Assembly (NCBI GenBank): GCA_904063045.1 | Contig: CAJFCJ010000012.1 | Coordinates: 2,413,180 to 2,477,179 of the forward strand | Source: Dimorphilus gyrociliatus | Taxonomy: Eukaryota; Animalia; Annelida | Reading direction: 5' to 3' | DNA: 64,000 nucleotides | Shown here: piece by piece, positions 32,308 through 58,608 of the stretch | How the letters are laid out: every line of letters begins with the position of its first letter | Position numbering within the stretch: the stretch's first letter is position 1 | Position numbers and translations under genes: made by a program | The notes under the pieces: model-generated | The model's input: only the letters and a program-made list of their open reading frames with translations | What the model was told of the DNA's origin: nothing | The model's database searches: none

Positions 32308-35300
32308 TTAGGCCATCATTGCAGCAAAGATAGCTGCTAGAATTAGCGAGATGTTAATAAATATAGCTGCAGCTCCCGCATCACCGTCGTTGAAGAAGAT
32401 GTTACATTTATCTCCTACGCAGCATTTTTCACATGCTGTTGTACCATCAGATGTTTTCTTACAGTGTTCCTCCTTTGTTGAACTAGTACATGTTACATTT
32501 CTACATTCTCTTGTAAATGTTGTTACGCCTCCCTTTTCTAATCTAGCAACCCAGCAGGCGCCACCATTACCGCATTCTTTCAATTTGATGGTGTCAGTTT
32601 CATTGACAAAGTTGGATTGTTCCTTTCCGCAGTTTGCTTCATTTCCAGAACAAGTAAGACATTGGACTGTTCAAAGTTCATAGGAAAAAATAGGTTTTAT
32701 GAGTAATGAAACAAATGATTATGTATATATATATATACTTACTTGCACATTGTCTGTCATTATCGTGAAGATGATACGCGCTTGAGCATTTATCACATTT
32801 AAAGCCATGAACACAAACTCCACAATTTGTTACTTGATTGGAACTGCACGAAATACATTCAGTTTTATCATCAGATAAAGTGTAGCCGGATTGACATTTG
32901 AAGCAACTTGCTTTTCCAGTAGTGTCCGCTTGTGGAGAACAATCCATGCAATTAGCGAAAGCAGATGTTGAACAGTCTGAAAGAAAATATATTTATTTTA
33001 GCCCAAAGCCTATTAACTATAAACATTAACTATAAACATAGATGAAAATACAATCACTTTACCTTCGCAAACTCCAGCTTTCAATGTAAATCCTTTTCTA
33101 CATTTAGTACATACTGATTTATCTGATGCGGAGGCGGTACAAACGTCACAATTGGCGGGACATGAAGCGCATTGTTTGAATGAACTTCCGTATAGAGCAT
33201 AGTATTGTTTGCATTGCGAACAGGATACGGAACCACTGTCAACTGTACATGTTGGACAATTCTTTGGACATTCGCTACATTGTTCTGAGCTCTTTCTGTA
33301 TCCTTGCATACAATTTGAGCATACAAGAACCCCTTTATCGTCTACATCTTTACATTCTGAGCATTGATTTGGACAAGAGTAACATTTTCTATCGGATGTT
33401 TTTCTGCCATAATTACTATCACAACTGTTAACGTCACATCCAATGACGTCATTTTCGTACGAACATTTGTTACAGTTATCAGGACAAGCTGAAATATTCA
33501 TTGAAAAATTATATTCAGTAATAATTCATTCTGTTTTTTTTTCTTCAAATTTTTACCTTCACATTTTGCAGTATTAGAATTCAAAACAAATCTTCCTTTA
33601 CATTTTGTACAAAGTGTACCAGTTTTATCATCGTTCAATTTACAAGTTTCGCAATTTCCTTCGCAAGCTGTAAACATCATTTTTCATAATTATAAAAAAT
33701 ATACTGTTACTTATGGATTATTTGACTTACGTAGACATTTTCCATCAGCAGTTGATGATGCGTAACCAGCAATACATGTTGCGCATGTTGTTACTCCTTT
33801 AGAATCAATGTTACAAGATGAACAAGGACTGTTACACGAAACACATTTGTTTCCAGATGTAAACAGTTTGTGTGTGCTCTTACATTCCTTACATTTTGTT
33901 TCTTTTGCAACATCATCCCAATCGCAATTTACGCAATTACTCGGGCAAGATATACAATTCCTACTACTGTCGAAAGTGAAACCAGAAGCACATTTAGAAC
34001 ATCCTTGACTTCCGTCATTTTTCAAATAACATCTCATACAAGAATCATCGCATTTTACACATGTTCCATCGTCAGATTTTGTGATATATCCATCAATGCA
34101 ACCAGTTGGAAGGCAATATGTTTGTTCGTTTTTGAAATAACACTTGGCACAGTTTGATGGACACTCATTACAATCAAAATCTGACCAATCAAGAGCATAT
34201 CCTGATGTGCATTCTACACATTTCTTTACTGCTGCATTATCTTGAACACATTTATCACAATTACCTGGGCATTCTATACATTCGTAACTACTGTCAGTTA
34301 AACCATAGCTACTGGCGCAATGGAATTGTAAGCATAGAGTTTCTGTATCACTTTTAGCTCGGCATTTTCCACAATTATCAGGGCATTTTAGGCAATTCTT
34401 TTTGGTGGTAAGTTGAAGAACATGAGTGTTTTCATCACATTTTGTGCATTTGTCTACAACGTCGCCTTCTTTAATTGTACAAGAAAGACATCCATCTCCG
34501 CAAGAAACGCATGTTTTTTTATCAACACTTGGAGCGTATCCCGACTTGCAAACTTGACATTCGTTTGGTGTAATGTCGTCGGGTTTTAGTGAACAAGTGT
34601 TACAGTTGTCCATGCATCCAACACATGCTGTTCTTGCACTGTTCGTCGAAAATCCACTCTCACATTTAGAACACTCCTTTACTTTTGATACTCCTCCTCG
34701 ATCAACAAAGGAACAAGTTTCACAAAAATCGTAACAACCATCACAATCCTTTTTATGTTCTTTAAAGATTTTACCAGTTGTACATGAGGTACATTCGACA
34801 AGAGTTGCACCACTATATTTGCAAGTTGGACATGCATCAGGACATTTTCTACATTGCTTAGCAGCTGTATCCAAATTATAGTTCGATGCACAATCAGAAC
34901 ATTCCGTGGTGGTGAAGGTTTTGTCAACGGAACAAGTTTTACAATTATTTTCACATTCTGTGCATGTTGTTTTATCATCAGATATTAAATATCCATCGTT
35001 GCATGTATCACATTTGGAACTATCTGATGGACAGGTTGCGCAGTTGGCCACTTGGCATGTTTGACAAGTAGTTTTTGCAGTATCAGGGAATTTAGTAGGA
35101 TCTGTACATTCTTCACACTGGGCTTTATTGGCATCACACTTTTTGCAACCACCAACGGTACATTCCTCACATGTTTTAGTGGCGGATACAAATCTATATC
35201 CATCAGCACAACCAGTTGATTTACATGCTGCCTTGTCGTTTAGTTCGCAATCATCGCAATTAGTAGCTGTACAAGCTACGCATACACTTGCTGCACCCGC

Positions 35301-38300
35301 ATCAATAGCTTTTCCTTTGACGCAATCTGTGCATACGTCTGGTGTACCAAAGTCACAGAGTTTACAATTGCTGCCAACAGTACATGGTACACAAGTTTGA
35401 TCAAGAGCTTTATATCCATGTCCTGTAGGACAACCAGTTGGCTTACACTTTGCCTTGTCATTTGGTTCGCAGTCGTCGCAAGGGGCTGTGCAAGCTGCGC
35501 ATACACTTGCTGCACCCGCATCAATAGCTTTTCCTTTGTCGCAATCTGTGCATACGGCTGGTGTACCAAAGTCACAGAGTTTACAATTGCTGCCAACAGT
35601 ACATGGTACACAAGTTTGATCAAGAGCTTTATATCCATGTCCTGTAGGACAACCAGTTGGCTTACACTTTGCCTTGTCATTTGGTTCGCAGTCGTCGCAA
35701 GGGGCTGTGCAAACTGAGCATACGCTTGATGCACCCGCATCAATGGCTCTTCCTTTAGCGCAAGATGTGCATACGGCTGGTGTTGCTTTATCACAGGTTG
35801 CACAGTTACTGCCTACTGTACATTGATAACAGGTCGCATCAGCCGAATTAAACAGATATCCGGAAGAACATCCAGTTGATGTACATTTTGTCTTGTCAGT
35901 TGGTTCACAAACATCACAATTTGTTGCTACGCAGGGTTCACAAGTACCCAAGTCTGTTACTGTATATGTAGCTGCACACACACTACATTGATTAGGATCC
36001 TTTTCTTTATAAAGACACTTTGTGCAAGGTGAAGGACAGCTTACACATTTGTTCTTCCTAGTATTTACAACATAGTTGTCATTACATACACTGCACGTTC
36101 CATCAGAATTACAAGTGGCGCAATTAGCAGGACATTTGTTACATTTGAGACCATCGCTTTGAACTTCGTATCCCGTATTGCATTTCGTACATTTTCCAAG
36201 TCCTGATAGATCAGTCTTCAAACTGCATTCAATACAGTTGCTATCAATACCACTACATGCTAAACATTCAGAGTTATCTTTATTCAAGATATATTTGTCG
36301 TCGCATTTCAAGCAACCATTTGCCCAAATTCCATCTCCAGCTTCATTCGGAACACACTTGATACAATTTGAAATAGTATCGGCACAAGCTTTACACGTTT
36401 GTAAATCGTGTTCCAAAGTTCTGCCACTTGAACATTTCTCTTCATAGCATTTTCCATTTCCATCACATTTGTCACAATTTCCGGTACAAGCGGTACAACT
36501 ATCACCATTTTTACCATATTTATTCATGCAGACGATACATTTTGGACTGCCATCAACAATTTTACAATGAGCACAACCTTCTCCGCAGGCTGTAAAACAA
36601 TATATTTCAATTAGGGTTTTCCTTGTTTTTTCTCTTTATTTGCTTTACAAATTGAAAATATGAAGACAAAGAAGACTTACATGAACATTGTCCACTTTCA
36701 TCAACAAAACCATAGTTAACTTCGCATTCGGAAGCAAAGCATCGAGAGACGCCACTGACATCTTTACACAGTTTGCAGTTTGATGGACAACCTTTAGTTG
36801 AAAAATAACAATAATGAGAATATGTCGAATAGAAGGCATTTGAAGCTTTTATATATTGACTAATTAATTGTTATCGCTTCATATTTATCATTTTATCGGA
36901 GATATATTTGCATGAAAATTGAACTAACCTAAACAAGTTTTATCAGAATCTTTGATGACGTATTTAGCCTCGCAGTTCGTACATTCGGCTCTGTTGTTCT
37001 TCCATTGACACGAGTTACAGTTGGATGGACATGCTTGACATTTTCCGTCACTGTCTTTTATATACTTGGCTTTACACAGCGTACACAATGTCGATTTACC
37101 AGATAGAACGCAAGTGAGACAGTTGGATGGACATTGTGTGCATGTTGTTGAGTCGGCAGAAAGTTGATAATACGATTGGCATTCAGTGCATGTTGTTCCA
37201 TCTGGATTGTTGGAATCTTCCGTACATTTATTACAGAATTCTTTGCAGGCCATACAAGTTTTGTCAGCAGATCTAACAGTATAACCAACAACACATTCCG
37301 AACATTTGGCAACCCCATTATCATTAGTGCATGTAGCGCAATTGGAAGGGCAGGATAAACATGTTCCATCACTATTTTCTACATAACGATCTCTACATTT
37401 CGAGCAAAACGTTTTCTTCGTATCTGATTTGAAAGTACATTCGAGACAAGCCGAAGGACACGAATCGCATTTCTTTGTTTCGGTGTTAAGAGCAGTTCCT
37501 TTATCACAAGACGAACAAACGAGATTATCGTTAGAATCGGCACTACAAACAGCACAATTGGAACTGCATGAAGAGCATGATTTATCAGACTTGAGACCGT
37601 ATCTTTTGAAGCACTGTGAACAGACTGTAGCTGCACCACTGACTGAACAAGTTTGGCAGAAACTGGGACATTCTGAAAATGAAAAAATTTTATAATATGA
37701 AGAACAGAAGAAGAATACAAATGTGAAGAAAAACATACTCATGCATTTTTTGTCATCTGTCAAAGGAGCACTAAAATCGTAGCAGTCGTAACATACTGGT
37801 TTACTATTTGTAACGTTACAAAATCTGCACGTACTGTCATCCGAGCAAGCTGTATTGACAAAAAATTGGTATATAAGCTTCAATAAATATTAAACGGCGA
37901 AGAAGAAAGATAGATAGATAGATTGATAATACAAATAATCATTTACCAATGCATTTTTGTGTTGCGGGATCTACACCATAACCATGTACGCATTGAAGGC
38001 ATTTTGTGTTGTCACCAGTTCCAGTTAATTCGCATTTCATACATTTGTCTGAGCAGTCTGATATTTAAATAAGCAGTTAATGAAAATAATGATGATGAAG
38101 GAGATAATGATAAAACTCTTTTTTTTTATTGATTTGAATAATGAAAACTTACCGATACACTTTTTCTGATCAGTGGATATAACTTGATTTGTGGCGCACT
38201 TCGCACATCTCAGGTCTCTTTTTGCACAAGATTCACAATTTGATACACCGTCACAGCCAGAGGTAGTTGCCGATTGCACGTATGCAACGGCAAGCAGGAA

Positions 38301-38327
38301 ACCTGCTAATGCTAGAAATACTTTCAT
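32308..38327 (-). CDS. Array gene A: giant Cys-rich CxxC/furin-like repeat protein with C-terminal Ly6-like domain and GPI signal, about 1,746 aa, intact
   Basis: Ten exons: 38327-38153, 38057-37947, 37849-37739, 37672-36929, 36791-36681, 36589-33731, 33667-33557, 33488-33063, 32976-32743, 32666-32308. These total 5,241 nt by hand count and all introns are phase 1. Signal peptide MKVFLALAGFLLAVAYVQS; the last exon has C..C...CEKCCVGDKCN plus a hydrophobic tail. Confidence 0.9.
35274..35711 (-). repeat. Near-perfect 219-bp (73 aa) x2 internal coding tandem repeat in gene A
   Basis: AGGGGCTGTGCA at 35481 and 35700, a period of 219. CTAPCDDCEPNDKAKCKPTGCPTGHGYKALDQ... is repeated with only a few substitutions. 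Confidence 0.92.
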
Positions 38328-39676: not shown

Positions 39677-42639
39677 TCACGTTTGAACAAGTTCTATTAC
39701 TTCTTCTTGTTCTTTTTCTTGATCTTCTATTAATATAGATTTCGTTGGGCTGTAGCAATAATCCCTTCTGTATTTGTGACCTCCACAGCCATGACAATAA
39801 ACAAACAGTTTTGCTAGAATATTCTTCCAGCTAAGGGTGAGCAATATCGAAAATAAACATAGCATTACTAAAGCACTAATACAACCCATTGCAACAGATA
39901 TAAAGATCATTAGCGAAAATCTTCTCAAGGCGTGAATATCTGTACAATACGATATAAGGCTTGTGCCAATAGACGTTAAGGCTGCAAGACAAACAGCCAT
40001 ACCGATCCTATCCACAGTAGCCTGAACTCTGTAGAAAGGTTGATCGGTTAAATTCGATGTATCGAGTTTAGCTTGTAGAACTGAAATATGCAATATAAAG
40101 TCAACACTTAAACCGGCTCCCAAAGCCAGACAGACTGTATCGCTAACGCCTATCTTCCAGTTCATTAGGGCCAGAACAGATATAGTAATTAGAACGGAAG
40201 AAGCCAAACTTGTAATAGATATAACAGAAATACATAGTTTTCTGGTAGATAAGATTAATACTATCGCTGTACCTGAAAGGGCAATTGCCAAAGACGAGCC
40301 CACACCTGTTAAGAGTGTTCTCTGAAGGTCGAACAATTCGAACTTTGACCAAAAAAAACCGTATCTTAACTTTCCTTTTTTGGAATTTTTAACCCAAAAC
40401 GCTTGCACCTTACGATAGAATTGCGCAATTTCGTTATAAGCAGGTGTAAAGTCTTGATTCGTGATGAAACTATAAGAAAATATCGACGATGAGTAATTAT
40501 CTCCATGAGCAAAATTTCCTAATTGATGTCCTAATAGTTTGTTTTCTATTAAAAAATTTAATTGTCTTTCATAGCAATTCTCAAAGAATTTATAGCCATT
40601 CAATAATTTCCAGTTACAACAATCTGGAGAAAAGGTTAAAGGTAATCTTGAACATTCTCTCGAACCATATTTGAGTAGTGTATCGATTAAACAAGGATAA
40701 TTTGTAATATTAAATTCTTTTCTTAAACTGTAACAGAATAATTGTAAATCTCTAACAGTTTCAGGATTAAACACGTCAATTCTCTTATCAACTTTTCCAG
40801 AGATCTTATCAAGAGGTTTCAGGAAAGGATAGCTCTTTACATCCTCAACAATTCCCCAAACGAAAGCGAGAGGCATTTTATACGTATCTACTTTGCCACG
40901 AAGATCTTGATATTTTTCGAGAAGATTATTTTCAGAGAATAAAAGTTGTCTCTTCCTATCCGATAGTTTTAATGGTCTACCCCATAATAGAATATAGCAT
41001 GACCCAATTCCACACATCAAATACAGTCCTATCCATATATACCTGAACTTGAAGATTAACTTAGAGACAAGTTGCGCAATCTTCTCAGATAACTTGACAA
41101 GTTCTACCTTTAATTTATAACGACAAATAGCCTTAATACTGTCGGGAGTTAGTCTATATTTAATGGGTTTAATGTATATTTGATGGATGCAAAGAGTCAT
41201 AGGTGTCCATGTCAAAGCGAGTAAAAGGTTGAATAAGAGTCCAAAAGTTGTCATTGTTCCAAACGCGTGAATAGCCGGAATTTTTGTTGTTAGTGTAGAA
41301 CCAGTGAAGGGAAGAGATTAAGAGAGAGAAAAAGGAAATTTATCATTATATTTAATTGGTAGGTCTCTTCCATTCACTAATAAATACCTAAAATGGCTAT
41401 ACAAGTTGAAAATGTTGAAGTTTGCAAAGATACTATTGAAAAGCGTAAGGCATCTCTAATAGCTAATTGTAAATTTAAGTCTGGTTCTGTTCTCTTCCAT
41501 GCTGCTAGTATAATGAAGACATCATCAACTCCAACTGCTAGGTGAATAACTATAGATACCAGATTAACAAATGGGAAAAATCTTATCGAAAAGACAATGC
41601 TATAGGTGAATATAGAGAAAATGATGCTCATTAATAGTAAGAGACCAGTTGATAAGGTAATTGTTATCGATTTACTATTAAAGTATACTAGTAAAGATAT
41701 GAAAATTCCACCCAGTATAGTTATCCTGGTGATAGTTTCGTTTAATCTAACGAAGAATAGATGACGATAAGTGTCAAGGCTATATTCGGTATCAAGTCTT
41801 ACTCCAGCTATCGCTATATCTTTCGTATTAATAGAATGAAATATAGAAAAATGATCTATGTACCAATTTGTTGTCTCTTCCATTGTAAAAGTTGGTTGTT
41901 TACTTGAAAATATATAAGTATATGTAGAATTATGAAGAACGAATTTGTAAGATTCCTCAACATTTTGAAATAATTGATTAGATTGAATATTCTTTAATTG
42001 TTCTTTATCTAAATTACAACAAGATTGATTGAGAAATGATGAAACTATTACGGATATCGATGTGTAATCTTTCTTAAATAATCTCTTCCCAAATTTCTCT
42101 ATTGAACATAATATCTCCCTATCTTCTAAAGATTTCCTCTTTAATTCCAATAGAATAAATGGTCTTGAATTATGAGGATTAACTAACAACGCAATAGCGG
42201 GGCAAAAAAAGAATAAAGACATTATTCATAGTAGTTAAGTAGTTAAGTACATGTATATACTTACAGTCTGATAATCCACTTCTCGGTATACGTCGTTTAA
42301 AAATATTATATTTCACTCTAATATCATTCATTAATAGTCTAAACTTGGATAATTCTGTTCCTTGGGCGATAAATCCCTAGTTAAATTATTTAGATATGTG
42401 TTTTTATATATGCAATAGTTGTTATGTAATAGTTAATTAACAGTCTCACATCTTCCGGTGGCGATACTTTAGGGAAATTGTACAGAATTATGAATAGAAA
42501 GAGTAAACTAAGAGAAAATATAATGCCGCAAAATTTTGTACTATTATTACAAATGAAACTGGAATAACTGTAATAATACTATTATTATATTCAATATATG
42601 ATTAAAAAAAGAGGAAGAGTACCTGTTCAAGATATACAT
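39677..42639 (-). CDS. DISP: Divergent Dispatched-family (RND/sterol-sensing domain) membrane protein, about 888 aa; exons 42639-42623, 42567-42450, 42376-42265, 42182-41388, 41301-39677
   Basis: YSSFI...TM1...PEDGFIAQGT, SSD motif FFPFVNLVSIVIHLAVGVDDVF, LLFSENNLLEKY, and TM10 GAGLSVDFILH. The acidic TM4/TM10 residues are retained. The last intron lacks an AG acceptor (see findings). The start exon is tentative. Confidence 0.78.
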
Positions 42640-43389: not shown

Positions 43390-46300
43390 TTAGGCCGTCA
43401 AAGCAGCAACCACAGCTGATAGAATTAGCGAAACATTAATAAATATTGCCGCAGCTCCCGCGTCACCATCGTTAAAGAAGATGTTACATTTATCTCCAAC
43501 ACAACATTTTTCACAAACCGTTGTACCATCCGATGTTTTCTGACAGTGTTCCTCCTTTGTTGAACTACTACATGTCACGTTTTTACATTCTCTTGTAAAT
43601 GTTGTTACACCTTCCTTTTCTAATCTGGCAACCCAACAGGCACCTCCTTTCCCGCATTCTTTTAATTTGATTGTATCAGTTTCATTGACAAAATTGGATT
43701 GTTCCTTTCCACAGTTTGCTTCATTTCCAGAACAAGTAAGACATTGGACTGTTCAAAATTCATGAGAAAAACCAGTCATATGAAGAATAATGGGATTGAA
43801 TATGTATATATACTTACTTGCACATTGTCTGTCATTATCGTGAAGATGATACGCGCTTGAGCATTTATCACATTTAAAGCCATGAACACAAACTCCACAA
43901 TTGGTTACTTGATTGGAACTGCACGAAATACATTCAGTTTTATTTTCAGATAAAGTGTAGCCGGATTGACATTTGAAGCAACTTGCTTTTCCAGCAGTGT
44001 CCGCTTGTGGAGAACAATCCATGCAATTAGCGAAAGCAGATGTTGAACAATCTAATAAAACCAAAATACATTGTACCTCATTTAAGTGGTTGATGACTTT
44101 TTAAGATAATAAATAATTTATAACCTTCGCAAGCTCCTGCTATAATTGAAAATCCTTTTTTACATTTGGTACATACTGATTTATCGGATGAGGTTGCTGA
44201 GCAAACATCGCAATTAGGGGGACAAAAAGTGCACTGCTTAAAGGAATCGCCGAACAAAGCATAGTACTGTCTGCATTTCGTACAAGATATTGAACCTCTA
44301 TCGATTGCACAATTTGGACAATTCTTTGGACATTCGCTACATTGTTCTGAGCTCTTTCTGTATCCTTGCATACAATTTGAGCATACAAGAACCCCTTTAT
44401 CGTCTACATCTTTACATTCTGAGCATTGATTTGGACAAGAGTAACATTTTCTATCGGATGTTTTTCTGCCATAATTACTATCACAACTGTTAACGTCACA
44501 TCCAATGACGTCATTTTCGTACGAACATTTGTTACAGTTATCAGGACAAGCTGAAATATTCATTGAAAAATTATATTCAGTAATAATTCATTCTGTTTTT
44601 TTTTCTTCAAATTTTTACCTTCACATTTTGCAGTATTAGAATTCAAAACAAATCTTCCTTTACATTTTGTACAAAGTGTACCAGTTTTATCATCGTTCAA
44701 TTTACAAGTTACGCAATTTCCTTCGCAAGCTGTAAACATCATTTTTCAAAATTATAAAAAATATACTGTTACTTATGGATTATTTGACTTACGTAGACAT
44801 TTTCCATCAGCAGTTGATGATGCGTAACCAGCAATACATGTTGCGCATGTTGTTACTCCTTTAGAATCAATGTTACAAGATGAACAAGGACTGTTACACG
44901 AAACACATTTGTTTCCAGATGTAAACAGTTTGTGTGTGCTCTTACATTCCTTACATTTTGTTTCTTTTGCAACATCATCCCAATCGCAATTTACGCAATT
45001 ACTCGGGCAAGATATACAATTCCTACTACTGTCGAAAGTGAAACCAGAAGAACATTTAGAACATCCTTGACTTCCGTCATTTTTCAAATAACATCTCATA
45101 CAAGAATCATCGCATTTTACACATGTTCCATCGTCAGATTTTGTGATATATCCATCAATGCAACCAGTTGGAAGGCAATATGTTTGTCCGTTTTTGAAAT
45201 AACACTTGTCACAGTTTGATGGACAAGCATTACAATCAAAATCTGACCAATCAAGAGCATATCCTGATGTGCATTCTACACATTTCTTTACTGCTGCATT
45301 ATCTTGAACACATTTATCACAATTACCTGGGCATTGTGTACATTCGTAACTACTGTCAGTTAAACCATAGCTACTGGCGCAATGGAATTGTAAGCATAGA
45401 GTTTCTGTATCACTTTTAGCTCGGCATTTTCCACAATTATCAGGGCATTTTAGGCAAGTCTTTTTGGTGGTAAGTTGAAGAACATGAGTGTTTTCATCAC
45501 ATTTTGTGCATTTGTCTACAACGTCGCCTTCTTTAATTGTACAAGAAAGACATCCATCTCCGCAAGAAACGCATGTTTTTTTATCAACACTTGGAGCGTA
45601 TCCCGACTTGCAAACTTGACATTCGTTTGCTGTAATGTCGTCGGGTTTTAGTGAACAAGTGTTACAGTTGTCCATGCATCCAACACATGCTGTTCTTGCA
45701 CTGTTCGTCGAAAATCCACTGTTACATTTGGAACACTCATTTACTTTTGATGCTCCTCCTCGATCAACAAGGGAACAAGTTTCACAATTTGTTTTACAAC
45801 CAACACAACTCTTTTTATCATCATCTAAGATTTTACCAGTTGGACATGAGGTACATTCGACAAGAGTTGCACCATTATGTTTGCAAGTTAGACATGAAGA
45901 AGGACATGGTTCACATTTGTTATCACCTGTATTGAAATTAGCGTCCGATGCACAACCAGAACAGAGTGGTATAAAATCTGGTTTCCATGTACATGTTTTA
46001 CAGTTATCTTCACATTTTGTGCATGTTGTTTTATCATCAGATATTAAATATCCATCATTGCATGTATCACATTTGGAGCTATCTGATGAGCAGTCTTTGC
46101 AGTTAGCCACTTGGCATGTTTTACAAGTTTTACTAGCTGTTATGAAGTTAAATCCAGCATCGCAACCAGTTGATTTACACTTCGTCTTGTCGTTAAGTTC
46201 GCAATCATTGCAATTAGCAACTGTGCAAGCTACGCAGTTGCCTGAATCGATAGCTTTTCCTTTATCGCAATCTGTGCAAGTTCCAAGAGTACCGGTAACA

Positions 46301-49300
46301 CATAATTTACAATCAGTTGCCGTGCATGGTTCACATTCTTTACTACCAGCATTATATGCAGTTCCAGCATTGCAACCAGTAGATTTACACTCCGCCTTGT
46401 TGGTTAGTACGCAATCATTGCAATTAGCAGCTGTGCAAGCTACGCAGTCGTTTCCATCGATAGCTTTTCCTTTATCGCAATCTGTGCAAGTTCCAAGAGT
46501 ACCGGTAACACATAATTTACAATCAGTTCCCGTGCATGGTTCACATTCTTTACTACCAGCATTATATGCAGTTCCAGCATTGCAACCAGTAGATTTACAC
46601 TCCGCCTTGTTGGTTAGTACGCAATCATTGCAATCAGCAGCTGTGCAAGCTACGCAGTTGCCTCCATCAATAGCTTTTCCTTTATCGCAATCTGTGCAAA
46701 CTGCAAGATCAGCGGTAACACATAATTTACAATCAGTTCCCGTGCATGGTTCACAGATTTCAGTACCAGCATTAAATGCAGTTCCAGCATTACAACCAGA
46801 AGATTTACACTTGTCCTTGTCACCTTCTTTGCAATCATTGCAATGAGCAGCTGCACAAGCTACACAAGTGGAATCACTAGCGATAAACATAAACCCAGTT
46901 GAACAGCCGGTAGTTTTGCACTTGGTCTTATCAGTTGGTTCACACTCATCACAATTTTGTACGGTGCATGGTTCACAAGTACCCGAATCTGTTGGTGTAT
47001 ATTTAGGAGCACATACACTACATTGGTCGGGATCCTTTCCTTTATAAGTACAGCTTTTGCAAGGTGAAGGACAACTGATACATTTGTTTTTCCTACTATT
47101 CACCACATAGTCATCATTACATACACTACACGTTCCATCAGAATTACATTTGTTGCAATTATCTGGACATTTGTTACATTTGAGACCATCGCTTTGAACT
47201 CCGTATCCCGATTTACATTTCGTACATTTTCCAAGTCCCGATAGATCAGTCTTCAAACTGCATTCAATACAGTTGCTATCAATACCACTACATGCTAAAC
47301 ATTCAGAGTTATCTTTATTCAAGATATATTTGTCGTTGCATTTCAAGCAACCATTTGCCCAAATTCCATCTCCAGCTTCATTCGGAACACACTTGATACA
47401 ATTTGAAATAGTATCGGCACAAGCTTTACACGTTTGTAAATCGTGTTCCAAAGTTCTGCCACTCGAACATTTCTCTTCATAGCATTTTCCATTTCCATCA
47501 CATTTGTCACAATTTCCGGTACAAGCGGTACAACTATCACCATTTTTACCATATTTCTTCATGCAAACAATACATTTTGGACTGCCATCAACAATTTTAC
47601 AATGAGCACAACCTTCTCCGCAGGCTGTAAAACAATATATTTCAATTATAAGTTTTCCTTGTTTTTTCTCTTTATTTGCTTTACAAATTGAAAATATGAA
47701 GACAAAGAAGACTTACATGAACATTGTCCACTTTCATCAACAAATCCATAGTTAACTTTGCATTCAGAAGCATAGCATCGAGAGACGCCGCTGACATCTT
47801 TACACAGTTTGCAGTTTGATGGACATCCTTTAGTTGAAAAATAACAATAATGAGAATATGTCGAATAGAAGGCATTTGAAGCTTTTATATATTGACTAAT
47901 TAATTGTTATCGTTTCATATTCATCATTTTTTCGGAGATTTATTTGCATGAAAATTGAACTAACCTAAACAAGTTTTATCAGAATCTTTGATGACGTATT
48001 TAGCCTCGCAGTTCGTACATTCGGCTCTGTTGTTCTTCCATTGACACGAGTTACAGTTGGATGGACATGCTTGACATTTTCCGTCACTATCTTTTATATA
48101 CTTGGCTTTACACAACGTACACAATGTCGATTTACCAGATAGAACGCAAGTGAGACAGTTTAATGGGCATTGCGTGCATGGTGTTGAACCAAAAGAAAGT
48201 TGAAAATACGATTGGCATTCAGTGCATGTTGTTCCATCTGGATTGTTGGAATCTTCCGTACATTTATTACAGAATTCTTTGCAGGTCATACAAGTTTTGT
48301 CAGCAGATCTAACAGTATAACCGACGATACATTCCGAACATTTGGCAACTCCATTATCATTAATGCATTTAGCGCAATTGGAAGGGCAGGATAAACATGT
48401 TCCATCACTATTTTCTACATAACGATCTCTACATTTCGAGCAAAACGTCTTCTTTGTATCTGATTTGAAAGTACATTCGAGACAAGCCGAAGGACACGGA
48501 TCGCATTTCTTTATTTCGGTATTAAGAGCAGTTCCTTTATCGCAAGATGAACAAACGAGATTATCGTTGGAATCGGCACTACAAACAGCACAATTGGAAC
48601 TGCATGAAGAGCATGATTTATCAGACTTGAGACCGTATCTTTTGAAGCACTGTGAACAGACTGTAGCTGCACCACTGACTGAACAAGTTTGGCAGAAACT
48701 GGGACATTCTGAAAAATAAATGAATATGATAAAGAAATGGAAAAGAATGTAAGATTTAAAAAAGACTTACTGATGCATTTTTTGTCATCTGTCAAAGGTG
48801 CACTATAATCGTAGCAATCGTAGCAAACTGGTTTACCATGTTTAATATTACATAATTTGCATGAATTATCTTCGGAACAGGCTGCAAGTAATTAGACTAA
48901 AAATGAAATAGTTTGACAAGAGTAAAGCGATCTGAAAATCAAAATTCTGTTTGGCTATTGCATTCGTATTTTTAGCATTATTTTTTTGGAAATTGTAAGA
49001 CATTCGGGAAAAAGTAAGTATGTAAGAGTCAGGCGAAAAAATGTGAATAGAGCTGTTTTCAATTTGACTAGTTGAAGAAATAGGTTTAAAGGGAAAAAGC
49101 TTGTATAACAAGTTTGTTTTATTGAAAGAATGTTTCAAAACGAAGTATTACTATTTTCTTAATTTTCATGAATAATGACATCATAATCTCTTAAATTGGA
49201 AACATTGCTTGAACTTTTTTTATCTACATAAATGACTTTTGTCCATGACAAAAAAGACTATCTGTTTTTTTAAAATTAGTAATGCCATACTGATTAGGTA

Positions 49301-49737
49301 TGAAAAATTTCTTCCATATTCTTTCATGAAAGATATAGACATAAGAAGAGATTCGGAATAAAAGAGAAATGTTTACCGAAGCACGTTTGAGTATCGGGAT
49401 TGACAGCATAACCAATAAAACATTCAAGGCATTTTGTAGCATCACCAGAACCACTTAAACTGCATTTCATACAGTTTGCCGTACAGTCTGAAATGACGAT
49501 AGAGAATGAATGGAAATAGAATTAATGACAGAGAAACGAGGATAAAGATAATGAAAACATACCAATGCATTTCTTCTGATTACTGGATAAAACCTGATTG
49601 GAGGCGCACATTGAACACCTTAATCCTCTATTGCTGCAACTTTCACAATTCGCTATGTCTTTACAGGCAGATGTGGTAGCGGATTGCAAGTGTTTAGCAG
49701 TAAGCCAAATTGTTATTAAAAACAGATAAAGTTTCAT
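43390..49737 (-). CDS. Array gene B: paralog of A with the same 10-exon layout, appears intact
   Basis: Signal peptide MKLYLFLITIWLTAKHLQS; large exon 47624-44793; Ly6-like last exon ends ...SAVVAALTA* at 43390. No stop or frameshift found in the exons I read. Confidence 0.88.
46228..46857 (-). repeat. 210-bp (70 aa) x3 internal coding tandem repeat in gene B
   Basis: CGTGCATGGTTCACA at 46321, 46531 and 46741, a period of 210. Two copies are near-identical and the third is more diverged. Confidence 0.92.
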
Positions 49738-49842
49738 ATTGAACTTTATTGAACTTTTACAATTGAAAAAGTGTTTATTACAACGGGAAACTTTTAAAGC
49801 TATTTTGTCTCCTCCTTTATGTCGCTTGAGGAATCTATAGCG

Positions 49843-49871
49843 AATGAATGGTGATGTCTGAAGCTTATATA
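49843..49871 (-). promoter_or_regulatory. TATA box (TATATAAG, 49871-49864) and Inr-like TCATT (49847-49843) of gene B
   Basis: Spacing of about 26 nt, with the same arrangement conserved upstream of gene D. Confidence 0.6.
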
Positions 49872-50823
49872 AGAATTTTTATCAATCTGAAACGAAAAGG
49901 CTAAATGAAAAAATTAAAGTAAAAGTGTAAATATTGAAAATATAAACAGTAATGCGAAACAATGAATTATTAATTCCATTTTGATAGTTTGAAAGAAATG
50001 AATGATTTTGTTGTTGATTTGAAGAATACAATAAATTGCCAATTTCTTAAGAACCTTTTATTAAAGAGAAAGTTTTTGTTAAGTTTTATTTTAGTTACCT
50101 AACAACGCCATTGTTTTTCATAATAAATTTGTTGTTTGAAAGAAATTTCCTGGTTTTATGCAACAAATGCAACTTTCTTTTTCTATCTGATTTAAAATCG
50201 TTTCCTTAGAGATTATCTACATATGTTCAAGTCTAATGAACATTTTTGCGAGTGATGTCTATTGCTATGTCTATTGATTGTTTTTTGTGATTTGTAATGC
50301 TATGCTTGTTTCGATAATTCTCAACATAAGGTGAAAGAATATTTTACAAACACTGATGGTATATTAATCGCTGTGGACATTACAAAAGCAGAAAATTAAA
50401 TGCTTCTTCTTTGATTTATTATGTAATCGTAGAAATATATAAATTAGGAATAAATCTTTCTTCAACACTCTAGTTATTCGTTTAAAAGGCGACAACTACC
50501 TATCATAGATAAAGTTTCGGTGCTGCTAAAAGTATCATAAAATTAGAGCAATAGCTTTTTATATCATCAAATAACAATGAAAATCACAATTGTTCAGCGA
50601 TCTTCCCTTCTATTACTTTTATTGTGTCTTCAGCAACAAATGTTACATCTTCAGATCCTGTATTTCTTACAATTGGTTTTAATGTCATTTAAATATGAGA
50701 GGTGGATAGAGAAGTATTACGAGCACATTAAAAGACTCAAAATTACCGAACACAACATAACTTAAAAACCTTCAAAAATATAAGTAGACTTATTTTCGTT
50801 ATCTGAATAGTTCATCGAAGATC

Positions 50824-52107
50824 TTAGGCCATCATATTAGCAAAGACAGCCACTAGAAGTAGCGAAATGTTAATAAAAATTGCTGCAGCTAACGCATCGC
50901 CTTCGTTGAAGAAAATGTTACATTTATATCCAACGCAGCATCTTGCGCACATCGTTGTACCGTCAGGTATTTTCTTGCACTGTTCCTCTATTGTTGAACT
51001 ATCACAGGTTAGATAGAACTGAAGTTAGACATAATACGATTGGCAATCAATTCATGTTGTTCCATCTTGATTGTTGGAATCTTCGTACATTTATTACAGA
51101 ATTCTTTGCAGGCCATACAAGTTTTGTCAGCAGATCTAATAGTATAACCATCAACACATTCTGAGCATTTGGCAACTCTATTATCATTAGTGCTTGTAGC
51201 GCAATTGGAAGGGCAGGATAAACATGTTCCATAAGTATTTTCTACATAACGATCGCTACATTTCGAACAAAAAATAAAGAAAGTGTTTGTATTATTATAA
51301 ATTGTGTTTGTTGTTGTCAGCTGTCAAAGGAGCGCTATAATCGTAGCAATCGTGGCAAACTGGTTTTCAATGTTTAATTTTACAGAATTTGCATGAATTA
51401 TCTTCGAAACAGGCTGTAAATAATTGGAGTAAAAATGGAATTCTATGGCAAGAGTAAAGCGATCTAAAAAATCCAAATTTTCTTTGTGTATTGCGCTCGT
51501 GTTTTTACTGTAATTTTTGCGGGAAATTATGAGAAATTCCGGGAAAACTTGAAGGTGAAGTTAGATGTATAGAAAAAAATGTAATAATGAGTTTAAAGGG
51601 AAAAAAACTTGTACGATATGATGATCATCGGAAGAATGTTTCAAAATAAAGTATTATTAATATATCGTGCAATTTTTTGAATACTAAAGTTATATTCTCA
51701 TAAATTGAAAAAATAGCTGAAATTTCATTTATCTGCATAAATGACTTTTTCCATGGAAAATAAAACTAGCAGTCCTTTAAACTTAAAGTAGTACAATACT
51801 TATTTGGTATGACTAATTTCTTTGATATTCTTTCATGAAGCATATGCAGATTAAACAGAAAAAAGCCTTAAGAAAAATAGATAAACATTTACCAAAGCAG
51901 GTTTTAGAGTCGGAATCTACAGCATAACCAACAGACTGCATTGTATACAATTTGCGGTACAATCTAAAATTAAGAGAAACAATGAATGGAAAATAGAAAT
52001 AATGGTAAAGAAATGCAATTGAAAAAGAGTTTATGGCAACGGGAAACTTTTACAGCTACTTTATCTCTTCCCTTACGTCGCTTGAGGAATCTATAGCGAA
52101 TGAATGT
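50824..52107 (-). pseudogene. Array relic C: collapsed copy with multiple large deletions
   Basis: The 5' UTR/Inr fragment (about 52020-52107) lacks TATA and exon 1. Exon 2 is frameshifted (about 51960-51895) and exon 3 has an in-frame TGA (about 51370). An exon 4 fragment (51270-51030) with a frameshift is fused near 51005 to the end of the Ly6/GPI exon (stop at 50824). Confidence 0.88.
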
Positions 52108-52553: not shown

Positions 52554-55500
52554 TTAGACTTTCATAGCAGTAAAAATAGCTGCTAGAATTAGCGTAATGT
52601 TCATAAATATACCCTCAGCTCCGGCATCGCCATTGTTAAAGAATATATTACATTTATCTCCTACGCAGCATTTTTCACATGCTTTTGTACCATCAGATGC
52701 TTTCTTGCAATGTTCCTCCACTGTTGAACTACTACATGTCACATTTCTACATTCTCTTGTAAATGTTGTTACGCCTCCCTTTTCTAATCTAGAAACCCAA
52801 CAGGCGCCACCATTGCCACATTCTTTTAATTTGATTGTATCAGTTTCATTGACAAAGTTGGATTGTTCCTTTCCGCAGTTTGCTTCACTTCCAGAACAAG
52901 TAAGACATTTCACTGTTCAGAGGAAAAATGAGTTATATATGTAATGAAAAGAGTAATAATGTATGTATACTTACTTGCGCATTCTCTATCATTCTTGTAA
53001 AGATGATACTCACTTGAACATTTATCACATTTGAAGCCGTGAACACAAACTCCACAATTCGTTACTTGATTGGAACTACACGAAATACATTCAGTTTTAT
53101 AATCAGATAAAGTGTAGCCTAGTTGACATTTGAAGCAACTTGCTTTTCCAGTACTATCAACTTGTGGAGAACACTCCATGCAATTAGCAAAAGCAGATAT
53201 TGAACAATCTAATTAAGCAATACATATTGTAGGTCATTTAACAAGTTGATGATATTTTAAGATAGTAAATATATAATCACCTTCGCAGGCTCCTGATCTA
53301 ATTGAAAATCCCGTTCTACATTTGGTACAGACTGAATTATAGAATGAAGTAGCAGAGCAAACATCGCAATTAGGGGGACAAAAAGTGCACTCCTTAAAAG
53401 AATCTCCGAACAAAGCATAGTACTGTCTGCATTTCGTACAAGTTATTGAACCTTTCTCAATTGCACAGTTCGGACAATTCCTCGGACATTCGCTACATTG
53501 TTCTGTACTTTTCCTAAATCCTTGCATACAAGTTGAACATACAAGAACTCCTTTATCGTCTAAATCTTCACAAACTGAGCAGTGATTTGGACAAGCATAA
53601 CATTTTCTATCGAATGTCTTTCTGCCAAATTTATAATCACAACTGTTGACGTCGCAACCAATGACGCCATTTTGAATCGAACATTTTTTACAGTGATTTG
53701 GACATGCTGAAATGTTTTGAATTAAATTAAATTGAATTGTACAGGAAAATTCCTTTCGTAGAAATTACCTCTGCAGTTTCCAACATCCAAATTCAGAATA
53801 AACCTTGGTTTACATTCAGAACAAAGTGTACCAGTTTTAGCATCATTCAATTGACAAGTTAGACAATTTTCATCACAAGCTGTGGGAATAGTTTTTTTCA
53901 CATATGCAAAAAAAGATTATAACATCAGTAACTTACGTAGACATTTTCCACCATCAGTTGATGAAGCGTAATTAGTAATACATGTTGCGCATGTTGTTAC
54001 TCCTTTCGAATCAATGTGACAAGATGCACAGGGACGATTACAGGACACACATTTATTTCCAGATGTAAACAGTTTATGTGTGCTTTTACATTGCCTACAT
54101 TTCGTTTCTTTTGCAACATCATCCCAATCGCATTTTACGCAATTACTCGGACAAGATACACAATTCCTACTAATGTCGAAAGTGAAACCAGAAGAACATT
54201 TAGAACATCCTTGACTTCCGTCATTTTTCAAATAACATCTCATACAAGAATCATCGCATTTTACACAAGTTCCATCGTCAGATTTAGTGATATATCCATC
54301 AATACAACCAGTTGGAAGACAATACGTTTGTCCATTTTTGAAATAACAATTATTACAGTTTGTAGGACAAGCATTACAATCGTAATCTGTCATGTCAAGA
54401 GCATATCCTGATGTGCATTCTACACATTTCTTTACTGCTAAATTGTCTTGAATACATTTATCGCAATTACCTGGGCATTGTGTACATTCGTAACTGCTGT
54501 CGGTTAAACCATAACTACTGGCGCAATGAAATTGTAAGCATAGAGTTTCTGTATCACTTTTAGCTCGGCATTTTCCACAATTATCAGGACATTTCAAGCA
54601 AGTCTTTTTCGTGATCGGTTCTAAAACATGGGTGTTTTCATTACATTTTGTGCATTTGTCAACAATATTTCCTTCTTTAATGTTACAAGATAAACAATCA
54701 TTTCCGCAAGAAATGCATGACGTTTTGTCAAGACTTGGAGAGAATCCAGACTTGCAACCTTGACACTCGTTTGGTGTATTGTCGACTTTTAGTGAACAAG
54801 TTAAGCAGTGAGCCATACATGGAACGCATGATGTTTTCGCACTGTGAACCGAATATCCACTCTCACATTTAGAACACTCCTTTACTTTTGATACTCCTCC
54901 TCGATCAACAAAGGAACAAGTTTCACAATTTGCGGGACAATATACACAACTCTTTTTATCTTCGGCAAAAATTTTACCATATGTACATGACATACATTCG
55001 ACAAGATTTGCACCAGTATGTTTGCAAGTTGGACATGAAGAAGGACATGTTCTACATTGCTTAGCAGCTGTATCGAAATTAGCGTTCGATGCACAACCAG
55101 AACATTCCGTGGTGAAGGTTTTGTCAACGGAACAAGTTTTACAATTATCTGTACATTTTGTGCATTCTGTTTTATCATAAGATATTAAATATCCGTCGGC
55201 ACATATATCACATTTGGAGCTATCTGACGAACAAGCGGCGCAGTTGGCTACTTGGCAGGTTTGACAAGTAGTTTTTGTAGTGTCAGGGAATTTATTAGGA
55301 TCTATACACTCTTCACACAGGCCTTTATTGACATCACACTTTTTGCAACCTGCAACACTACATTGTTCACAAGTTCTAGTGGGCCAAATGAATCTGTATC
55401 CAAGAGCACAGCCGGTTGATTTACATGCTGCCTTGTCATATGTTTCGCAATCGTCGCAATAAGTAGCTGTACAAGCTTCACAGTTGACTCCATCAATAGC

Positions 55501-58500
55501 TTTTCCTTTGGGGCATTCTGTGCATTGATGTGGTGTAACATAAAGACACTTTTTACAATTACTAGCTACCGAACACTGTATACAGATTTTATCAGGTTTG
55601 AATGAATATCCGTCTGCACAACCAGTTGGTTTGCATGCATGCTTGTTATATTCTTCGCAATCGTCGCAATTGCCTGTACAAGTTACGCATACATTTCCTG
55701 CTCCAGCGTCAATAGCTCTTCCTTTATCACAAGATGTGCATTCATTTGGCGAATCAGCATAACATTTTTTACAACTACTAGCAGCAGTACATCTCACACA
55801 GGTTTTATCAGAAGATTTAAATGAATATCCACTAGGACAACCAGTTGGTTTGCATGCATTCTTGTTATATTCTTCGCAATCTTCGCAATTGCCTGTACAA
55901 GTTACGCATACATTTCCTGCTCCGAAGTCAATGGCTCTCCCTCTATGGCAAGATGTGCATACAGCTGGTGTAGCTTTATCACAGGTTGCACAGTTACTGG
56001 CAGGTATACATTGATAACAAGTTTCATCAAAGAAGCTGAATAAAAATCCGAAAGCACAGCCGGCTGCAGTACATTTAGTTATGTCTATTGGGTTACAAAC
56101 ATCACAATTTTGTGCGTTGCAGGGTACACAAGTACAAAATTCTGTTAGTGTATATGTAGCTGCACACACACTACATTGATTAGGATCTTTTTCATTATAG
56201 AAACACTTTGTGCAAGGAGAAGGACAGCTTACACATTTGTTTTTCCTAGTATTTATCACGTAGTTTTCATTGCAGACACGACACGTTCCATCAGAATTAC
56301 ATTTGTCGCAATTATCAGGACACTTGTTACATCTAAGACCATCGCTTTGAACTCCGTATCCCGTATTGCATTTCGTACAGTGGCCAAGTCCCGATAGATC
56401 AGTCTTTAAACTGCATTCAATACAGTTGCTATCAATACCACTACATGCTAAACATTCAGAGTTATCTTTATTCAAGATATATTTGTCACGGCATTTCAAG
56501 CAACCATTTGTCCAAATTCCATCTCCAGCTTCATTAGGAACGCATTTAATACAATTCGAAATAGTATCGGCACAAGCTTGACACGTTTGTAAATCGTGTA
56601 GCAAAGTTCTGCCACTCGAACATTTCTCTTCATAGCATTTTCCATTTCCATCACATTTGTCACAATTTCCGGTACAAGCGGTACAACTATCACCATTTTT
56701 ACCATATTTATTCATGCAGACGATACATTTTGGACTGCCATCAACAATTTTACAATGAGCACAACCTTCTCCGCAGGCTGTAAAACAATATATTTCAATT
56801 AGGGTTTTCCTTGTTTTTTCTCTTTATTTGCTTTACAAATTGAAAATATGAAGACAAAGAAGACTTACATGAACATTGTCCACTTTCATCAACAAATCCA
56901 TAGTTAACTTCACATTCGGAAGCATAACATCGAGAGACGCCATTAACATCTTTACATAATTTGCAGTTTAACGGACAAACTATAATTGAGAAAGGCAAAC
57001 AATGAGAATATGTAAGATTAAATGAGATTTACAAGTGATGTCTACAAAATTATCAATCACTTATCTGTATTACCTAAACAAGTTTTATCAAAATCTTTGA
57101 TGACGTATTTGGCTTCGCAGTTCGTACATTCGGCTCTGTTGTTCTTCCATTCACAAGAGTTACAGTTGGATGGACATGCTTGGCATTTTCCGTCACTATT
57201 TTTTATATACCTGTCTTTACACAACGTACACAACGTCGATTTACCAGATAGAATGCAAGTAAGACAGTTGGATGGACACTGTGTGCATGGTGTAGAGCCA
57301 AAAGAAAGTTGATAATAGGATTGGCATTCAGTGCAGGTTGTGTCGAGTTTATCATAGTCCTCTATACATTTATTACAGGAACGGTGGCAAGATATACAAT
57401 TTTTGTCAGTAGATCTAATAGTATAACCAAGGTCACATTTCGAACATTTCGGAACTCCATTATCATTTGTGCATATGGCACAATTGGAAGGGCACGGTAG
57501 ACAGATTCCATCAGTATTTTTTACATAGCCGTCGCTACATTTCCAGCAAAACGTCTTCTTAGTATCTGACTTGAAAGTGCATTCAAGACAAGCGGAAGGA
57601 CACGAATCGCATTTCTTTGTTTCGATATTAAGAGCAGTTCCTTTATCGCAAGATGAACAAACTAGATTATTGTTAGAATCGGCACCACAAACAGCACAAT
57701 TGGAACTACATGAAGTGCAGGATTTATCAGACCTGAGACCGTATCTTTTGAAGCATTGTGAACAGACTGTATCTGAACCACTGACTGAACAAATTTGGCA
57801 GAAACTGGGACATTCTGGAGATGAAAAAATATTTTAAAATGAAGAAAATAAAGAAGGTGTTTGTATTAAAAAACCATACTCAAGCATTTGTTGTCAGCTG
57901 TCAAAGGAGCGCTATAATCTTAGCAATCGTGGCAAACTGGTTTACCTTGCTCAATTTTGCAGAGTTTGCATGAATAATCTTCGGAACAAGCTATAAAGAA
58001 TTAAAATGAATACGTAGTTTTAGTTTCTGATGAAATTATTTGATTTGCTTTTCATTTCAACTTTGGAATTAAATGCTTAACTTCTATCGACATAAATGAC
58101 TGTATGGCATAAGAAAATGGAACTCTCTGTTCTTTGAAATGAGTAATGCAAGAGCAAATATGCATGAAGAACTTCTTTGATAAAATACTAATATCATGAA
58201 AGATATTGATGTAGGAAGAGATTAAGAATAAAAGACAAAATTTTACCAAAGCATGTGTTACTGTCGGGATCTAGACCATAACCAGCAGAACATTCAAGGC
58301 ATTTTGTGGCATCACCAGATCCAGTCAAACTGCATTTCATACAGTTTGCGGTACAGTCTGAAATGAAGAAAAAGATTGAATGGAAAATAAAATTAATGAT
58401 AGAGAAATGAGGATAGAAATAATGAAAACATACCAATGCATTTTTTTTGATCAGTTGATAAAACTTGATTAGAGGCGCACTGCAAACACCTCAAGTCTTT

Positions 58501-58608
58501 ATCGCTACAAATTTGACAATTCGCAATATCTTCACAGCCAGATGTTGTTGCGAATTGCAGATTTGTAGCCTTTAGCCAAATTATTATTAAAAATATATAA
58601 AATTTCAT
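52554..58608 (-). pseudogene. Array gene D: full-length paralog whose only lesion found is TAC>TAA (57922-57920) in the 111-nt exon 3; either a young pseudogene or functional by exon skipping
   Basis: Signal peptide MKFYIFLIIIW...; exon 3 (57990-57880) reads CHDC*DY where B reads CYDCYDY. The other exons I read are open (large exon 56777-53937; last exon to 52554). Confidence 0.75.
55471..55899 (-). repeat. About 219-bp x2 internal coding repeat in gene D
   Basis: ACCAGTTGGTTTGCATGCAT at 55621 and 55840, a period of 219. CTGNC.DCEEYNK.ACKPTGC is repeated and the remainder has diverged. Confidence 0.85.

Follow-up and report, generated by a model that had tools for sequence, protein, structure and literature searches.

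The array and the exon 8 junction of gene B

We analyzed a 64,000-nucleotide window of the genome of the annelid Dimorphilus gyrociliatus (assembly GCA_904063045.1, contig CAJFCJ010000012.1, positions 2,413,180 to 2,477,179). Comparison of the window with itself revealed a tandem array of related genes and gene relics, all on the minus strand, in the order A, B, relic C, D, relics E/F, G and relic H (Table 1; positions are counted from the first nucleotide of the window). The subject of this paper is gene B, different parts of which have different nearest relatives within the array. It is very probable that B is a genuine, intact mosaic paralog, in which sequence from A was copied by non-crossover ectopic gene conversion onto a backbone that was partly G-like and partly private to B.

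The open frame of B is intact and encodes 1737 amino acids, of which 15.9% are cysteine; its introns are all of the GT-AG type and all in phase 1. When the B model was projected onto the other copies, A (1746 amino acids) and G (1699 amino acids) were also intact, and the frame of D (1739 codons) was open except for one in-frame TAA in exon 3 (window 57920-57922), at a site where B has a tyrosine (CYDCY in B, CHDC-stop in D). D is possibly a pseudogene of very recent origin, one that is still exchanging sequence with G. Like B, copies A, D and G are each preceded by a TATA box of their own, which begins 122-135 bp 5' of the respective ATG. The joined, spliced model served for the frame check and for estimating ratios of nonsynonymous to synonymous substitution (dN/dS, or omega), and searches with external tools were run exon by exon.

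A, B, D and G were aligned over the whole locus using MAFFT, and identities were tabulated for each feature. In the stretch of B from 45720 to 44315, which runs from the end of exon 6 into exon 8, there were only 11 differences from A in 1406 bp (0.8%), with none in the last 396 bp. The identity extends to sites that do not affect the protein: intron 6 had 1 difference in 63 bp, intron 7 had 0 in 68 bp, and the synonymous divergence (dS) between A and B in exon 7 was 0, whereas the same two introns differ by 37-51% between A/B and D/G. Nine of the 11 differences are private to A and mostly derived; they either arose by mutation in A after the transfer or mark islands of B that escaped conversion. 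The tract also holds two sites private to B. The similarity to A stops immediately after the codons for ECPKNC (44335-44318), with 13 differences from A in the next 40 bp. The remainder of exon 8 (exon 8b, the part upstream of the break being exon 8a) was 94.7% identical to G, 88.9% to D and 75.8% to A, and the corresponding values for intron 8 were 93.1%, 76.4% and 47.9%. Over the 261 ungapped columns from 44313 to 44052, B differed from G at 14 sites, from D at 37 and from A at 82.

A single history for B was rejected by all of the recombination tests. In a GENECONV-style permutation (1606 polymorphic columns, 5000 shuffles), A and B shared runs of 95, 52 and 33 polymorphic sites, compared with a maximum of 21 after shuffling (p<2e-4), and the longest of these spanned 44710-44315. 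A MaxChi scan of 45720-44052 placed the best split at 44315|44313 (chi2 213, permutation p<1/2000), with 190 A-type and 9 G-type sites to the left and 5 and 73, respectively, to the right, and a 3SEQ-like random-walk statistic gave p<5e-5. Maximum-likelihood trees, rooted with a more distant family copy on contig C214, were incongruent: for 45799-44315 both (A,B) and (D,G) were recovered with 100% support, whereas for 44314-44052 A fell outside a clade of B, D and G, also with 100% support. In the approximately unbiased (AU) test, every topology lacking A+B was rejected for the left segment (p<=0.003), and every topology containing A+B was rejected for the right segment (p=0.004-0.008).

Ancestry of the other segments

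A sequence-only reading of this locus had described B as a three-part chimera with a D-like 5' end, an A-like middle and a G-like 3' end. The A-like middle was borne out, including the near-identity to A outside a central variable block, introns included (intron 4 was 97% identical), as were the break at about 44315 and the switch of the rest of exon 8 and intron 8 to G and, less closely, D. The descriptions of the two ends did not survive intact. Promoter and exon 1 had been matched to D and relic C rather than A; they are indeed unlike A, and the proximal promoter is nearest to relic C, but relic C has no exon 1 and the affinity to D is not specific. The 5' end of G lay beyond the window and thus out of sight of that reading. 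The nearest relative of exon 1 was relic F (85%, with D at 79% and G at 76%), that of intron 1 was G (91%, with D at 87%) and that of exon 2 was D (84%), and for exons 1-2 neither (B,D) nor (B,G) was favored by the AU test.

In the older A-like tract, whose upstream limit is the first base of exon 4, B and A differ at about 3.4% of sites. Over the 5' half of this tract D is the odd one out, A, B and G being in agreement; over its 3' half B follows A, and D and G are mutually identical. Inside the central variable block lies a tandem repeat specific to B (210 bp x 3.4 copies, 46153-46863); there was no closer copy of this block anywhere in the assembly, the best matches being 66-87%. The whole genome was searched (one haploid reference of 77.9 Mb in 349 contigs), and no closer donors for the 5' end, the central block, exon 10 or the 3' end of B were found outside the array.

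Nor is the 3' end G-like throughout. Exon 9 differs from A at 5 of 234 sites and from G at 20 (dS 0.02 versus 0.23), and the right-hand break of this patch coincides with the exon 9/intron 9 boundary, beyond which intron 9 is G-like again. Exon 10 carries 22 singleton substitutions private to B, mostly synonymous, and its exon-wide dS against every other copy is 0.41-0.49 (omega 0.09-0.22). Exon 10 of B is an old private lineage, whereas A, D and G have been homogenized among themselves in this exon. Overall, the mosaic comprises at least eight segments, with at least six switches of nearest neighbor.

Table 1. Features of the array and segments of gene B (window positions; ext, extended coordinates)
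Feature	Position	Strand	Remarks
Copy A	32308-38327	minus	from self-comparison of the window
Putative donor stretch in A, matching the young tract	33253-34658	minus	
Patched/Dispatched-like gene	39.7-42.2 kb		between A and B; unrelated to the array family
Gene B, coding region	43390-49737	minus	10 exons
B exons 1-5	49737-49563, 49487-49377, 48881-48771, 48708-47965, 47827-47717	minus	
B exons 6-10	47624-44793, 44729-44619, 44550-44125, 44051-43818, 43748-43390	minus	
B far-upstream segment	49861-50067	minus	nearest G, 89%; not alignable to A
B TATATAAG box	49864-49872	minus	starts 134 bp upstream of the ATG
B proximal promoter and 5' untranslated region	49760-49850	minus	relic C 90%, D 81%, G 80%
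B exon 1, intron 1, exon 2	49377-49737	minus	non-A (A 63-71%); trichotomy with D and G
B exon 3, G-like	48771-48881	minus	G 92.8%, A 81%
B older A-like tract	47350-48708	minus	first base of exon 4 to early exon 6; matches A 37672-36315
B central variable block	45721-47349	minus	private or mixed origin
B young tract, A-derived in our reading	44315-45720	minus	end of exon 6, intron 6, exon 7, intron 7, exon 8a
B exon 8 junction	44313-44315	minus	last A-specific site 44315; first site with B=G=D, not A, 44313
B exon 8b and intron 8, G-like backbone	44052-44313	minus	
Nearest relative of the preceding, in G	62323-62583	minus	exon 8b and intron 8
B exon 9, A-like patch	43818-44049	minus	left break 44049-44004; right break 43821-43813
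B intron 9, G-like	43749-43817	minus	5 differences to G; 17 and a 6-bp indel to A
B private part of exon 10 (Ly6/uPAR-like domain)	43498-43711	minus	D=G, A close to both
Relic C	50.4-52.1 kb (50389-52106)	minus	
Copy D	52554-58608	minus	
D stretch identical to G	56600-57290	minus	matches G ext 65617-66307
Relics E/F	59.8-61.6 kb	minus	
Copy G	61661-67938 (ext)	minus	5' end beyond the window
Relic H, truncated	ext 68792-71039	minus	outside the window, past G; closes the array

Of the truncated members, relic C is a deletion derivative made up of a promoter fragment lacking a TATA box, portions of introns 1 and 2 and of exons 2, 3 and 4, and, after these, exon 10. The promoter fragment is a mosaic in its own right, combining a core identical to G with B-like ends. 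What remains in relic H is exon 10, which carries a TGA, together with exon 9 and pieces of exons 6 and 7. Between A and B, two long minus-strand open reading frames (ORFs; window 39677-42222) match the Pfam Patched SSD/sterol-sensing domain, and the gene they form looks like a member of the Dispatched/Patched group.

Another feature was found in intron 1 of G (6817-6867 of the extended sequence L001, outside the window), where a 51-bp stub is 100% identical to the 5' half of exon 2 of B. It is followed by 19 bp containing a 3' splice site and then by G's own exon 2; if exon 1 of G were spliced to the acceptor of the stub, the frame would run into a stop codon. The stub has the look of a scar from a non-homologous join by which G acquired a B-like 5' end.

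Probable source and direction of the A-like tracts

Ectopic (non-allelic) gene conversion, one of the two mechanisms that the sequence-only reading had suggested, is strongly supported as the process that made B. In the older backbone of B, the far-upstream segment, exons 3 and 8b and introns 1, 8 and 9 are G-like (about 5-11% from G), and the central block and exon 10 are private. At least two, and probably three, non-crossover conversions would then have brought in sequence from A, about 11 kb away: an older one (3.4% diverged) that runs from exon 4 into the first part of exon 6, a young one (0.8% diverged) covering the 1.4 kb of 45720-44315, and one covering exon 9.

Across the exon 8 junction the identity between A and G is even, i.e., 0.775 in exon 7, 0.839 in exon 8a, 0.758 in exon 8b and 0.46-0.64 in the introns, whereas that between B and G leaps from 0.49-0.84 to 0.93-0.95. 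Because the divergence of A from G is constant and only B switches, we infer that the shared tract is A's native sequence and that B was the recipient. Since the G-like parts of B are 5-7% from G, compared with 0.8% for the tract shared with A, B would have existed as a G-related copy before the pasting occurred. The two flanks of the young tract have other genealogies, being B-private and D/G-like 5' of 45721 and G-like 3' of 44313. The tracts end where similarity between donor and recipient collapses, i.e., at the intron 3/exon 4 boundary, in mid exon 8 and on either side of exon 9, next to introns that are 48% and 75% identical to A. Such end points match the expectation for homology-dependent repair and suggest that termination was limited by homology.

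Several points weigh against this interpretation. The predominance of A-private differences in the young tract would leave the direction of transfer to be read from the patterns of divergence. The patch in exon 9 is weaker than the other two, because the AU test did not reject A lying outside (B,(D,G)) (p=0.27). The junction is known from the one reference assembly, in which Pilon polishing and HaploMerger2 could have produced a haplotype-specific or partly artefactual junction, and a protein search with the exon 8 ORF found no independent identical ORF, the only external match in the length range being a protein from a Logan assembly (58% identical, 128 amino acids).

The first of these points bears on the possibility that B donated 45720-44315 to A, so that A would be the recombinant. 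Identity is symmetric, and a predominance of changes on the A side is compatible with that direction. However, the sequence shared by A and B is as far from G and D as is the neighboring sequence of A (exons about 76-84% identical, introns about 46-64%), and if the tract were native to B, its distance to G would have to change abruptly, and without cause, at 44315. We therefore regard a transfer from B to A as improbable, and the opposite direction as the one to which the divergence patterns point.

It is more improbable still that the junction is absent from every actual DNA molecule, A reads having been merged into B by the PBcR consensus, Pilon or HaploMerger2. The published assembly (about 78 Mb in about 350 scaffolds) was built from noisy PacBio RS II reads of pooled animals using PBcR, Quiver, Pilon and HaploMerger2; the PacBio reads were selected for lengths of >=5 kb, and the assembly was polished with 101-bp Illumina reads and haplotype-merged (PMC7854359). 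A copy of B that was G-like throughout would differ from A by 16-50% in exons 7-8a and introns 6-7, and at that divergence a clean overwrite of 1.4 kb by mis-recruited reads or short-read polishing is unlikely. The two B-private sites within the tract also argue against it, as do the B-private sequences within 1.5 kb on either side, which reads of >=5 kb would span, and the similar patchiness in other pairs such as D-G. The 5-7% divergence of the G-like parts from G, together with the private blocks, also indicates that B is a distinct locus rather than a join of A and G reads.

The second mechanism suggested by the sequence-only reading, unequal crossover between A-like and G-like copies yielding B as a hybrid without later conversion, has a similarly small chance of being correct. 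The genes are in tandem in the same orientation and have long identical stretches in common, and with phase-1 introns throughout an exchange would keep the frame. However, a hybrid of this kind should have one breakpoint and parts of equal age. B has instead the multiple switches described above, and its segments are of unequal age, the A-like ones differing by 0.8% and 3.4% from A and the G-like ones by 5-7% from G. Moreover, a crossover would have lost or duplicated the Patched/Dispatched-like gene that lies between A and B. The internal position of the A-like patches and the presence of this unrelated gene thus favor non-crossover conversion over unequal crossover.

The array and its relics could also be maintained as a germline or somatic system for shuffling modules, diversifying a coat of glycosylphosphatidylinositol (GPI)-anchored proteins in the manner of protist antigen families, or, in a narrower version, the exon 9 patch could stem from RNA- or cDNA-templated repair; it does sit between introns that were left unconverted. 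We consider these ideas highly unlikely. A cassette system, in which silent donors feed a single expression site, was rejected on the grounds that none of A, B, D and G lacks a TATA box and ATG of its own, and the relics were rejected as recent donors because they are only 76-90% similar to B. In the flanks the dN/dS values are 0.1-0.35, indicating purifying selection. With promoters of their own in the intact copies, relics that were not recent donors, and purifying selection on the flanks, nothing points to a programmed variation system.

Finally, the notion that there was no recombination and that selection on the protein keeps the segments of A and B alike can effectively be dismissed: the exons are under purifying selection (omega 0.1-0.35), but this reading is refuted by the identity of A and B in introns 6 and 7 and at the synonymous sites of exon 7, the same introns being 37-51% different from those of D and G.

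The protein family and conversion across the array

The predicted product of B starts with MKLYLFLITIWLTAKHLQS and finishes with DGDAGAAAIFINVSLILSAVVAALTA-stop, and its sequence indicates a signal peptide followed by CxxC repeats, with a Ly6/uPAR-like domain and a hydrophobic tail at the C-terminus. The genes of the array encode giant, cysteine-rich, probably GPI-anchored surface proteins that end in a Ly6 domain. In exon 10, a framework of 12 cysteines that closes with CCxxxxCN is invariant across 24 paralogs. Matches of exon 10 to Pfam QVR were weak and were obtained for 12 of the 24 family members, and sequence searches of Pfam and the PDB with exon 10 and exon 4 yielded nothing that reached threshold. 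An AlphaFold model of exon 10 (pLDDT 77) matched three-finger/LU domains in all 43 of the PDB matches listed, including the TGF-beta receptor II ectodomain, GPIHBP1, Lypd6b, C4.4A, uPAR and snake toxins, with probabilities of up to 1.00 and E-values of >=0.012. In its cysteine framework and modeled three-finger fold, exon 10 qualifies as a Ly6/uPAR domain, with the limitation that the E-values of the fold matches are only 0.01-0.3. It differs from known Ly6/uPAR proteins in that the domain caps a cysteine rod of about 1600 residues.

The rod resembles the Giardia VSP proteins and the CxxC/furin-like repeat proteins of the ciliate immobilization-antigen type in having long runs of CxxC cysteine modules, and its nearest clusters in the ESM Atlas were ciliate furin-like/VSP proteins (score 0.88), which is a lead only. 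Membership of the Giardia VSP family (PF03302) was rejected, because exon 6 scored 21.5 bits against a Pfam gathering cut-off of 31.4. In addition, unlike the Giardia proteins, these are encoded by animal genes with introns, and they end in a Ly6/uPAR domain and a hydrophobic tail rather than a transmembrane-CRGKA tail. A literature search did not find this family or locus described.

Conversion within the array is not confined to B. In the same permutation test D and G shared a run of 81 consecutive polymorphic sites, corresponding to about 735 bp of 100% identity (48181-47447 in B coordinates), which spans the end of exon 4, intron 4, exon 5, intron 5 and the start of exon 6, whereas the neighboring introns of this pair are only 63-75% identical. 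This stretch represents a separate recent conversion. Intron 5 (47625-47716 in B) is identical in A, D and G, with two substitutions and a 1-bp indel in B, whereas other introns can be aligned only poorly between some copies; an Rfam search of 32-64 kb, including this conserved intron, gave no match. Judged by such patterns, conversion pervades the array.

Interlocus gene conversion between tandem paralogs has been described in humans, e.g., for the gamma-globin genes HBG1/HBG2, RHD/RHCE and CYP21A2/CYP21A1P. As in those cases, the tracts in B are bounded regions of near-identity that include introns and synonymous sites, their flanks have another genealogy, they stop where homology drops, the reading frame is kept, and pseudogene copies in the array take part. 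The differences are that the host is a miniature annelid, that the function of the gene family is undescribed, and that the mosaic is unusually fine-grained, with one junction located to within about 2 bp.

Mosaic surface-antigen genes also arise by segmental gene conversion in protists and fungi, as among the VSG genes of Trypanosoma brucei and the MSG genes of Pneumocystis. The latter are the subject of bioRxiv 10.1101/158881. Those systems share with the present one cysteine-rich and probably GPI-anchored surface proteins, arrays with truncated relics, and intact genes that are patchworks. They differ from it in that here each intact copy has its own TATA promoter, with no single expression site, the relics, at only 76-90% similarity to B, were not recent donors, and the flanks are under purifying selection; nor is there evidence here of switching or of a parasitic lifestyle.

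We therefore view this as a clean, statistically solid case of ordinary interlocus gene conversion in an unusual family of animal surface proteins. The suggestion in the sequence-only reading that the process is assembling new variants is accurate as a description of B, but no further: the flanks are constrained and, as a net effect, conversion homogenizes the copies as much as it diversifies them. Although the mechanism is a textbook one, the locus shows, at base-pair resolution and with a direction that we infer, how conversion has shaped a tandem family in the compact genome of a spiralian. Trees of whole genes, or orthology calls, will mislead for this family, and the locus offers a concrete test of whether a family of cysteine-rod, Ly6-ended proteins is being homogenized or diversified.

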